Assembly: GCA_038496445.1 (NCBI GenBank)
Contig: JALMLS010000390.1
Coordinates: 50,653-114,652, forward strand
Origin: Trichosphaerium sp. ATCC 40318
Taxonomy: Eukaryota > Protista > Tubulinea
Length of the DNA: 64,000 bases
Direction: 5' to 3'
Every line of letters starts with the position of its first letter. The stretch's first letter is position 1. The translations under genes and the position numbers were made by a program. The notes under the pieces were generated by a model that saw only the letters and a list, made by a program, of their open reading frames with translations, made no database searches and had not been told where the DNA came from. This document shows positions 33,506 to 36,456 of the stretch, piece after piece.

Positions 33506-34333
33506 TTACTCTCCTATAGCTTCTCTGTATGCTTTGAATATATGAAAATGTACAAATGCATCAAAACCCTTGCGTAGCAAGGCTGGTATGATACCTGCAA
33601 AAAAAGCCGCGTAACCTGCTGCTTGGTACATATCTGAACAAAATTGAGAAATACCGAACGCCCCATAACGACCAGCTTGTAATGAGCACATATTAGAGGC
33701 TATAGCATCAAGAGGTACATTTATAACATGAACAGCTACACCAAGAGCCATCATTGCGTTAGGAGAAAGCCACTTTTTTCGAAGTGTCAAATCCAAAAGT
33801 AAAAATTGTATCATCAATGGAATGAATCCAACATAAATATCACTATAGAGGGATCCTGTGATAACAGCTGGTGTGATTAATCTCTCTACTATGCGTACTT
33901 GTATACAACGAGTTGGTGTATATACTAGAGCGCATGCGACGGCTAAAAAGTGTTATTCGTTAGCGGGTTTTTGTTTTATTTGAGTGAAAAGCTCAAAACG
34001 TACATAGGAGTACTCCAAATAGGATTTTAGACTTGATAACGCTTCCTTTAACGTATTTAAACATAATATGTCGTGTAGCCATCTAAATTGAGGTATAAGC
34101 GTTTGTACTTGCGTAAAAAAGCGTACTATAGGGAGTTTAGCGAGTAACGCAGGTACTGTTGCAGTATAGAATCCAAGTATGCCAAACTTGTTAATAATAT
34201 CTCCTAGCGTATCTACAGTGTTCGTATACGCCAGTTGCTGTATTATTTGAGCTGCTTGAAGCGGAATATAAACAAGCTTTGCTGTCAGGTTCGCAAAGAA
34301 AAGCGCAGCGTAGTCTTTCCATTTGGCATCCAT
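33506..34333 (-). CDS. Divergent mitochondrial carrier (SLC25) family protein
   Basis: Three repeats with P-kink helices (IPLQAAQ, TPTRCIQ, VPLDAIA) and G-x-x-x-[FL][YF] matrix helices (GILGFYT, GSLYSDI, GYAAFFAGIIPALL). Two short introns. Confidence 0.65.
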
Positions 34334-34541: not shown

Positions 34542-36456
34542 TTATTCCTGAGGATCTTTCGCTACATTCTCGTGAAGTAATCTCGCCACTTTTTTGTATA
34601 TTCTTTGTGCAATGAGATTGCGTGATTTTGAACATTTGAATGTAATCCAACGATCAGCGTCTTGTGTGTGAAATCTTTCATAAAACGAAGAAATTCTTGT
34701 TTGGAATGAGATAAAGTTGTCCAAAACGCTCTGATTTGGGTCTCCGATATCAAGCCCTGCTTCGTAAACAGACACCAATGAATCCCCAGCCTCTACTTTA
34801 TAAGATAAGGCATCATCAGACAATGAAGGCTCGTTTTCCTTTGAACGGAGTAAAACACGTTCTGTTGCTAAACCTGGATCCACTCTACAATAAACAACCT
34901 AAACAATATTTTTAACAACTTGTTTACAGTCACTTGTCACCGTACCATATGAGGCCTAACGTTAACTGCATAAATATTCAATAGCCATTCCTTTCTGAAT
35001 CCACGTGCTTGACCACGTGCAACACCAGTGAACCAGTATCTATCAGATACTACAACTTTTTTTGATTGAAGCGCTGGAATTATACTCTTTGTTACTATGA
35101 ACTGAAATTCTAATGCTTGCACAACTGTCAATAATACGCTCCTCATATCCTCTTCACGTTTTAGAAACTTAATATACTTGTAGTGTACACCCTTACGACA
35201 CCAGCGAGTTGTCAAGGTCTATACAGATGAAAATGAGAGGTTAACATATTGGAGTGACATACTGAAAAGTTCCATCTTAGTTTTGATTGTAGCATCTGGA
35301 CTTGAGTAGATTTTCCAGCCCCATCAAGACCTATTATGTTGTTTAGATACGTTAAAGCTCCATTAACTAATGACCTTCAAAAACAATGAGTATTCCTTTT
35401 TGAAGCTTTGTTCCACGTAGGAATATGATTAGAGCTGCAAAGAGTACCATCAAAATGTAAAATTTCATAAAACTTTCAAAATCAGGATCAGACAATGGTG
35501 CTACCATCACGAATACTATAATCAATATTGACGCAAGTATTTGAACACTGTCATTAAGTGGGTTCAGATCTTCAATGACTAGAATGAGGTCATCAACAAA
35601 GACAGTAAACAGAAGAGTGAGTACCTTCTTTGTGAATGTCAAATCGGATTGTGTTGTAGAAACCACAGATGAACATAGATGCAGCAAGATTAATCAATAT
35701 CGCTTCATATCGTTGTAAATACAAGGGTATACAACAAACAAAAATAAATACTAATACTGGAGGCAATGGCTAATAGTTGAAGAGTAAGTTAAAAGTACAA
35801 AAAAAACCCATCACCCATTTTGATGTTACAACAGCTTCTCTTTTAAACTCTCTTTTCTGTTCCAATATGGCGTCATATGGTCTTCTCACTGGTATTATAG
35901 GTACTACTACATCGGGTTGTAATTGATTAATATGTTCTTGTGTACTTAGAAGAAGACCATCAATCGCTCTTGAAGTTACAAAATCTTGCCTACCGAGATA
36001 TTCACGCAATGACTCAACAAGCGAAATGCTACATTTCATTTGGTTTAAAATCTTTGTAAACCCTGTCATATTCAAGGCAACACTTTCAAGAACCTTTGTC
36101 AGCATTGCCTCAAAGTTTTTATATTCCCTCAAGCGTCCATTCCTCAGTTGATCTTTTTTTCATGAAAATGTCATAAAAACATAACAACTTTTTTTTTTGT
36201 ACCAATGCGCTGAGACCTCGTTTGACATTTCCTTATCATCCGTTTAAATCCATCATTTACTTTACAAATTTGACGTTTAAACTCTTTTGTGATGACACTG
36301 TTGCTCACTAATTGTTTTAATACGTTTATGCTATTCTTGACGTTACAACGTACCAAAGCGTTGCTTCACTACACCCAAAAGTTTTGTATAGTCAAGGTAC
36401 GTATGTTCTTGAGCTTTTTGGCTTTGTAAGTACAAAGCGTACTGAGTTTGAGCCAT
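34542..36456 (-). CDS. SPX domain + 4 TM helices + thymidylate-kinase-like (PPK3-like) P-loop kinase fusion, 8 exons
   Basis: The frame is continuous across 7 GT-AG introns: YLDYTKLL / EFKRQICKVNDGF / LNMTGFTKIL / FVTS (SPX); four hydrophobic helices; GILIVFEG-LDGAGKSTQ, IIPALQSKKVVVSDRYWFTGVARG, RPHMVVYCRVDP, YEAGLDIG..FISFQTRI. Confidence 0.85.

Follow-up and report, generated by a model that had tools for sequence, protein, structure and literature searches.

Within a 64,000-nucleotide (nt) stretch of the genome of Trichosphaerium sp. ATCC 40318 (contig JALMLS010000390.1; hereafter the window, whose positions are used throughout), a gene on the reverse strand is predicted to encode a 530-amino acid (aa) protein that joins an SPX-homologous domain, four membrane helices, and a P-loop kinase domain. 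The kinase groups with the lineage of PPK3, a heteromeric polyphosphate (polyP) kinase of the dTMP kinase superfamily that is encoded in operons with PPX, SixA, CHAD, and Pst genes (PMC12995831). Homology identifies the gene as a reduced, short paralog of P0001, a 1231-aa protein with the layout SPX, 12-transmembrane (TM) MFS, kinase, and DUF2252. We suggest that a bacterial MFS-kinase-DUF2252 gene, from islands concerned with phosphate starvation and polyP, entered a eukaryotic lineage, that SPX was added to its N-terminus within eukaryotes, and that a duplicate in the source organism then shed DUF2252 entirely and the transporter for the most part, with erosion of its SPX ligand site. The product would be a membrane-tethered phosphotransferase of phosphate/polyP metabolism, with SPX and kinase on one side of the membrane, and would move phosphate between ATP/ADP and polyP as PPK3 does, either alone or with the long paralog. 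We give this explanation as a whole (gene, ancestry, and phosphotransferase role) a probability of roughly 0.5. The features of the gene are as follows.

34542..36456 (-), complete coding sequence of 530 aa and a stop, in 8 exons with 7 introns (splice model, P0001 homology, transcript contigs)
35911..36456 (-), degenerate SPX-homologous domain: aa 1-150 in exons 1-3, interrupted by introns 36308-36353 and 36153-36202 (paralog hidden Markov model [HMM], profile, paralog model)
35770..35814 (-), intron 3: 45 nt, GT..AG, linking the SPX exons to the membrane exons, without read evidence
35418..35769 (-), four hydrophobic helices in two hairpins (Kyte-Doolittle windows >1.6), with intron 4 within
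34545..35411 (-), PPK3-clade kinase domain of the thymidylate kinase (TMK) fold with P-loop: aa 287-530, from the last part of exon 5 through exon 8, with introns 35331-35374, 35219-35262, and 34899-34945
35305..35375 (-), P-loop GLDGAGKST: aa 299-307, split by intron 5, invariant in the family kinase alignment
35030..35047 (-), SDRYWF, the DRX motif with the catalytic arginine: aa 379-384 (alignment)
34692..34766 (-), C-terminal signature YEAGLDIG...NFISFQTRI: YEAGLDIG at aa 457-464 (alignment)

The splice model was built by hand from the sequence. Its eight exons (on the reverse strand, 36456-36354, 36307-36203, 36152-35815, 35769-35625, 35578-35375, 35330-35263, 35218-34946, and 34898-34542, stop included) are separated by introns of 46, 50, 45, 46, 44, 44, and 47 nt, in order, with GT..AG ends in 7 of 7. 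If intron 3 is retained, the frame closes after 19 codons (ORF 35770-36132). The first-pass annotation, a reading of the sequence alone, had likewise joined fragment open reading frames (ORFs) through seven GT-AG introns into one frame, and the motifs that it quoted are all recovered in the spliced product: YLDYTKLL (aa 20-27), NMTGFTKILNQMKC (aa 97-110), the four helices, GLDGAGKST, SDRYWF, and YEAGLDIG, with P-loop and DRY intact as it had described them.

Transcript evidence comes from X1, a public run consisting of contigs only and the single run that holds the locus. A 153-nt contig matches 35490-35578 joined to 35625-35688, with intron 4 (35579-35624) precisely left out, and a 252-nt contig equals 34620-34871, within exon 8, with zero mismatches. 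The gene is therefore transcribed and at least one modelled intron, intron 4, is removed. Introns 1-3 and 5-7 are predicted from frame, GT-AG ends, size class, and homology; the spliced kinase aligns with P0001, whose sequence is unspliced and transcript-derived, free of gaps at the exon 5/6, 6/7, and 7/8 junctions, and the tblastn alignment is interrupted at modelled intron 7. Read support for intron 4 alone, at low and patchy coverage in one run, would fit a wrong gene model in which the SPX and membrane-kinase parts are two genes, or a decaying pseudogene. But the frame stays open over eight exons and seven introns of one size class, the same domain order occurs in P0001 on a single transcript contig, and transcripts cover both exon 8 and the exon 4/5 junction, so we judge such an error very improbable. 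We hold the gene model and the domain identities with high confidence.

Motifs of the catalytic PPK3 subunit (P-loop Lys/Ser/Thr, DRY arginine) are intact in the window kinase. Its C-terminal signature is common to the PPK3-type clade and absent in E. coli Tmk, with a matching segment in the alignment of P0001 and STK_15430. The domain scores 249 bits against the family HMM, and BLASTP aligns window aa 244-522 with P0001 573-854 at 48% identity (E 1e-79). Comparisons with the window protein were local; fold and database searches used exon pieces or P0001. The best solved relative of exon 7 is 2plr/4nzy/4rzx/5h70 (E 2.2e-8), with canonical thymidylate kinases at 6e-3 or worse, and exon 8 alone found no solved relative. 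On the same chain (2plr/5h70), the whole P0001 kinase domain scores 100 bits (E 1e-27), versus at most 51 bits on TMKs of Plasmodium, human, yeast, vaccinia, Thermus, Aquifex, S. aureus, and E. coli. This chain, STK_15430 of S. tokodaii, is homologous to the catalytic subunit of PPK3; a role of the DRX arginine has been described for PPK3, in which dTMP-binding residues are not conserved (PMC12995831).

The relatives are publicly annotated as "dTMP kinase", and exon 7 has a weak match to Pfam Thymidylate_kin (E 3.6e-4), as might be expected of an ordinary dTMP kinase or a CDC8/DTYMK-type paralog with extra domains. However, the Pfam match reaches 20.7 bits versus a cut-off of 27, and the TIGR00041 equivalog cut-off of 83.25 bits is reached neither by exon 7 (20) nor by the P0001 domain (62.4). 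Structures of canonical TMKs, whether bacterial, archaeal, eukaryotic, or viral, score at most half of what STK_15430 does. Moreover, the E. coli Tmk segments TREPGGT, FYAAR, and QAYQG, which we take to be its dTMP-binding, second-substrate site, are replaced in the window. With scores below cut-offs and a position outside canonical TMKs in both trees described below, where a branch with support 100/99 separates the kinase from E. coli Tmk and other TMKs, we rejected a canonical dTMP kinase identity, which has next to no probability left. The first-pass view that the kinase is unlike CDC8 is thus upheld by structure ranking, sub-cut-off scores, and trees, and its matching of the motifs to a TMK-like subfamily encoded near ppx and CHAD genes, with crenarchaeal PPK3 among its members, proved correct (PMC12995831; operon contexts below). 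We found no PPK3-specific model in NCBIfam. P0104, which is cPPK3-like and encoded in a PPX/CHAD operon, narrowly exceeds the TIGR00041 cut-off (86.8 versus 83.25), which explains why "dTMP kinase" labels are widespread on likely polyP kinases.

A profile search with fusion-type kinase domains returned 2884 stand-alone proteins, the best of which are 45-50% identical to a bacterial fusion kinase. The three genomic contexts opened for these relatives all have a tandem pair of TMK-like genes: one with PstSCAB-PhoU-PPX and CHAD/His_Phos_1, one with Metallophos and CYTH/PhoU/Pst, and one without phosphate-related neighbours. P0104, a member of such a pair, matches 5h70 at E 3e-66. Across 80 listed loci of species-representative genomes (stand-alone PPK3-like genes only, exclusive of Sulfolobales and of fusions), a second TMK-like ORF lies directly downstream in 76; the remaining four have the first gene only, and at least two of them, L055 and L069, end at a contig edge right after it. 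Three rPPK3-like genes (L007:6681-7424, L008:6693-7379, and L009:6762-7505) have the P-loop GxDGxGRST, with Arg for Lys, and keep the DRY arginine. Because these partners keep that arginine and Saci_2020 lacks the DRX arginine (PMC12995831), the inactive PPK3 partner may have been disabled by different routes in different lineages.

Both trees place the window kinase as the first-pass reading would predict, in the PPK3-type clade and apart from E. coli Tmk. In a quick tree of 87 rows, cPPK3-like, rPPK3-like, bacterial fusion, and eukaryotic kinases form one clade (support 96). In a careful tree of 52 rows this clade has support 100/99 and a long stem; inside it, cPPK3-like and rPPK3-like proteins group together (97/92), as do bacterial fusions (98/98) and, weakly, eukaryotes (64/42). 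The window kinase groups with P0001 and P0002 at 100/99 and, with P0036 added, at 100/100. A single clade of all fusion-type kinases is not rejected by an approximately unbiased (AU) test (p 0.31). The trees were built without Saci_2019 and Saci_2020, and their PPK3 clade is anchored by operon-paired relatives and the match of P0104 to 5h70. On this phylogeny, the window kinase is assigned to the PPK3 lineage, on a fusion-type branch of its own beside the catalytic and regulatory subunits.

The closest relatives of the gene are longer. A search of 1.84 billion representative proteins with exon 8 gave four matches, namely P0001, P0002 (1234 aa), and two fragments, and a search of the protein collections did not turn up the 530-aa product itself. 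The P0001 ORF is the only one on its source, a transcript-like contig of 3.9 kb. A 2342-nt X1 contig touches the window at the P-loop only (35300-35332), and since both of its flanks translate to P0001 sequence, the window gene and P0001 are expressed in the same organism/culture. A polytopic region of ~380 residues and the C-terminal 370 residues of P0001 have no counterpart in the window gene, and no further domain is concealed downstream of its stop, where the next gene begins 200 nt on. The search for a second paralog that the first-pass annotation had proposed was therefore successful elsewhere in the organism, and not within the 64-kb window, which holds no second TMK-like gene of the kind that stands side by side with its paralog in PPK3 operons. 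Two further eukaryotic proteins extend the family. P0036 (1393 aa) has Pfam matches to SPX, MFS_1 (5.7e-13), Thymidylate_kin, and APH/DUF2252, and P0057 (794 aa; Ancoracysta twista, EukProt EP00164) has SPX, Thymidylate_kin, and DUF2252, is without a membrane part, and is soluble. The known eukaryotic distribution is patchy: the source organism, Ancoracysta twista, plus a handful of contigs from transcriptomes or metagenomes.

Approximately 20 bacterial proteins of ~1190 aa combine MFS_1, Thymidylate_kin, and DUF2252/APH, and their named records are Elusimicrobiota metagenome-assembled genomes (MAGs). They match 83% of P0001 (transporter, kinase, and DUF2252) at E ~1e-120. Their N-termini are Ala/Pro-rich and have no match to the SPX HMM. 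In public records these proteins are labelled "dTMP kinase" or "MFS transporter", and they appear to be uncharacterised. Four of the genes, with products of ~1190 aa, were placed in their neighbourhoods.

L003:8001-11594, bacterial fusion gene
L004:8001-11687, bacterial fusion gene
L005:8001-12317, bacterial fusion gene
L006:8001-11579, bacterial fusion gene

Neighbouring genes encode Metallophos, a second MFS, PPK1, and CYTH, followed by His_Phos_1, PHO4, PhoU_div, and a PhoB/R-like pair. PPK1 and CYTH adjoin the fusion gene in three of the four loci, a pair of Metallophos and monogalactosyldiacylglycerol (MGDG) synthase occurs in two, and in P0048 Metallophos is fused C-terminally to the fusion protein itself. 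These neighbourhoods link the family to phosphate/polyP physiology. We consider it likely that the eukaryotic family is of bacterial origin via such a fusion gene. The first-pass annotation had pictured an acquired polyP kinase grafted onto SPX and a eukaryotic membrane anchor. A bacterial origin of the kinase is retained, the one-off graft gives way to a reduced paralog, and in place of the eukaryotic anchor we propose the acquisition of a ready-made fusion, most likely with its membrane part included.

The N-terminus of the window protein is, by homology, a true but degenerate SPX domain, the identity first proposed for it. This homology is transitive, through the family HMM and through P0036 and P0057, which exceed the Pfam SPX (PF03105) cut-off of 27.8 bits (37.5 and 41.6 bits, respectively) and start with the classic MKFGK/MHFGK...YLDYK.LK. 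An HMM of four paralog and ortholog N-termini scores the window at 62 bits (aa 9-143), and BLASTP aligns window aa 3-147 with P0001 5-159 at 28% identity (E 3e-11). At E<=0.01, a family profile made of the four N-termini and window exon 3 retrieves 39 solved chains, each of them an SPX domain, including OsSPX1 (2e-18), XPR1 (1e-17), and Vtc4 (3e-13), and further Vtc3, Pho90, PHO1, and SYG1. The fold was tested with the paralog segment P0001:1-175 rather than with the window protein. Its AF2 model has a pLDDT (predicted local distance difference test) score of 89.3 and a predicted template modelling (pTM) score of 0.82, resembles the SPX domain of XPR1 at a TM-score of 0.74/0.73, and retrieves SPX entries as its first 35 Foldseek matches.

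The ligand site of this domain has been eroded. In Vtc4, the ligand residues are Y22, K26, and K133 of the phosphate-binding cluster (PBC) and K129, K132, and K136 of the lysine surface cluster (KSC) (PMC9911596). P0036 and P0057 each keep 6 of 6, P0001 keeps 4 of 6, and the window keeps 2 of 6, the equivalents of Y22 and K129, as judged by motif alignment of YLDYTKLL and FTKILNQMKC. By this alignment, the basic surface with which SPX domains bind inositol pyrophosphates (PP-InsPs) is largely lost in the window protein; a partial loss of the basic cluster had been noticed from the sequence before, and it is substantial. Because four of the six PP-InsP-binding residues are lost, it is more likely that the SPX domain of the window protein mediates interactions or provides a scaffold than that it senses PP-InsPs with high affinity.

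Between SPX and kinase, Kyte-Doolittle analysis finds the same number of TM helices as the first reading, four, in spans of aa 183-200/205-220 (hairpin 1) and 242-259/267-284 (hairpin 2). Since this number is even, SPX and kinase would share one side of the membrane, presumably the cytosolic one. Descent of the helices from MFS could not be demonstrated: in an hhalign comparison of the four-helix region with the MFS domain alignment of the long forms, the probability is 0.1% and no homology is detectable. The last hairpin alone prolongs the BLAST alignment with P0001, and the membrane part most likely arrived together with the kinase.

The window kinase keeps 74 of the 92 columns that are invariant among the three long eukaryotic forms (80%) and is thus not decaying. 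We lean toward a role in phosphate/polyP metabolism as somewhat more probable than the explanation as a whole. PolyP itself is our best single guess for the substrate, and a tentative one.

Several observations weigh against the proposed explanation. No single mRNA over all eight exons is seen among the X1 contigs, and the suggestion of the first-pass annotation to confirm one is answered in part, by splicing of intron 4 and transcription of exon 8. Pfam calls no SPX on the separate exon pieces of the window and gives SPX no significant E-value, a hint at most, on P0001 and P0002. The four bacterial contigs come from related MAGs and amount to fewer than four independent observations. PPK3 needs a tandem-encoded regulatory partner, and the 64-kb window has none. 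The window kinase and a bona fide cPPK3-like protein share only 27% identity, and a polyP activity of fusion-type kinases is a plausible extrapolation from their relatives.

The substrate region itself adds to these points. The text of PMC12995831 gives no residue numbers for the substrate cleft of cPPK3; as a proxy for cleft residues, we took 67 columns that cPPK3-like and bacterial fusion kinases alike conserve. P0057 has 60 of them and the rPPK3-like partner L008 has 48. The window has 40, P0036 has 41, P0002 has 39, and P0001 has 38, and E. coli Tmk has 28. The eukaryotic MFS-type clade, the window included, has therefore altered ~40% of PPK3-conserved positions. Changed columns include WNSS to W-C/S-R/K-x, LTPxTF to MR-S/N-xLL, and ARDxVRGxD to ARGxARG-F/L-R. 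They align with the three E. coli Tmk segments named above, and the changes cluster at the second-substrate region of TMK-fold kinases. Across the eukaryotic clade they gain Arg/Lys and lose Asp, which fits a polyanionic substrate without identifying it.

Such heavy remodelling of the second-substrate region could also mean that the gene and its ancestry are as described and that the kinase acts on a nucleotide or another phosphorylated small molecule tied to the ancestral MFS cargo, for example in organophosphate salvage during phosphate starvation. An ancestral protein that joins a transporter to two kinase-type domains would suit this role, as would the weak likeness of the DUF2252 model to N-acetylhexosamine-1-phosphate kinase (Z 5.9) and to fructosamine-3-kinase and macrolide phosphotransferase (Z 4.6-5.0). 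The Metallophos and MGDG-synthase pair, found in two of four islands, is typical of phosphate-starvation lipid remodelling and would point to a general Pho response. Yet the closest characterised relative is a polyP kinase, PPK1 and CYTH genes stand beside the fusion in most of the bacterial loci, and the added Arg/Lys and dropped Asp suit a polyanion. We regard a non-polyP substrate of this kind as unlikely, though it deserves to be kept in mind.

A different concern is raised by what the short form has lost. With transporter and DUF2252 gone and four of six SPX ligand residues lost, it might serve mainly as a regulatory or scaffolding subunit of the long paralog, like rPPK3 with cPPK3 or Vtc2/3 with Vtc4, and have little catalysis of its own. 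The terminal branch of the window kinase is the longest in its clade (0.83-0.95), the kinase has unique changes at otherwise invariant positions (D411H and D500K), PPK3 is a heteromer of two paralogs (PMC12995831), and both paralogs are expressed in X1. The window kinase, however, has its P-loop lysine and DRY arginine, in contrast to the rPPK3-like partners with GxDGxGRST and to Saci_2020 with its missing DRX arginine, and it has kept the large majority of clade-invariant kinase positions. A mainly regulatory short form is, in our assessment, less probable still than a non-polyP substrate, and a membrane-tethered phosphotransferase of phosphate/polyP metabolism remains our preferred reading.

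Compared with known systems, the window protein is nearest to PPK3 (Saci_2019/Saci_2020; STK_15430, 2plr/5h70; PMC12995831) in its kinase. It shares with PPK3 the fold, clade, P-loop, DRY, and the C-terminal EAG-D...F..(F/Y)Q signature; STK_15430 is its best solved relative, and its prokaryotic relatives lie among polyP/Pho genes. Unlike PPK3, the window kinase shares its chain with SPX and membrane helices, lacks a tandem regulatory partner, sits on a separate fusion-type branch, has an insertion of ~25 residues before YEAGLD, and retains ~40 of the 67 conserved positions. The bacterial MFS-Thymidylate_kin-DUF2252/APH fusions are homologous to P0001 over three domains and are the likely source of the eukaryotic family, whereas they lack SPX, and the window copy lacks MFS and DUF2252. 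Like plant PHT5/VPT1-type SPX-MFS phosphate transporters, the long paralogs begin with SPX followed by a 12-TM MFS, but their MFS derives from the bacterial fusion, with two kinase-type domains behind it; the window copy, with four helices only and no detectable MFS homology, does not have the 12-TM MFS of such transporters.

The VTC complex (Vtc4: SPX, TTM polymerase, and TM channel) resembles the window protein in having SPX, a polyP-related catalytic domain, and membrane helices in one chain. In contrast to VTC, the catalytic domain of the window protein is a P-loop kinase unrelated to the TTM/CYTH tunnel, the domain order is another, and nothing suggests a translocation channel. No window exon piece has a Pfam match to a CYTH/VTC domain, and the P-loop kinase is the sole catalytic domain. 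The protein is best regarded as an analogue, not a member, of VTC; of the VTC analogy first drawn from the sequence, the domain logic holds and a TTM/CYTH catalytic domain is absent.

The architecture had been thought undescribed, and full-text literature searches found no paper that joins SPX with thymidylate kinase. PPK3 was described in 2024-2026, in prokaryotes only, and the paper mentions no MFS fusions, DUF2252 fusions, or eukaryotic members (PMC12995831). The family reported here, with SPX before a PPK3-lineage kinase and a transporter in its full-length form, offers concrete candidates for polyP synthesis or use. To our knowledge, the enzymes that make or use polyP in eukaryotes are largely unknown beyond the VTC complex and the bacterium-derived PPK1 of Dictyostelium, and the window gene is a candidate for eukaryotic polyP chemistry outside VTC. 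If its origin is as proposed, the family would clearly illustrate how a multi-domain gene from bacteria became part of phosphate signalling in eukaryotes. It is a speculative and rather doubtful extension that some protists possess a second, VTC-independent and SPX-headed polyP system derived from a bacterial transporter-PPK3-type fusion, in which the long form would couple transport to phosphotransfer and the short form would be its membrane-bound catalytic or regulatory partner.

The locus is eukaryotic in character, with short spliceosomal introns and a G+C content of ~37%. A gene of the mitochondrial carrier family lies at 33506-34333 (-), ~200 nt downstream of the stop of the kinase gene (Mito_carr matches in two ORF pieces). 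A bacterial contaminant was considered and rejected on the spliceosomal introns and this neighbouring gene.

DUF2252, which the short form has lost, is an uncharacterised domain. In P0001 (864-1231), a confidently predicted model (ma5f04c38418e; pLDDT 85.6, pTM 0.87) had no convincing structural match, with a best Foldseek E of 0.19 and VIA-align Z of at most 6.2, mostly to cystatin-like sheets; its resemblance to APH-type small-molecule kinases is weak. Near its N-terminus, the domain carries HGxxHxxN and DFD motifs.

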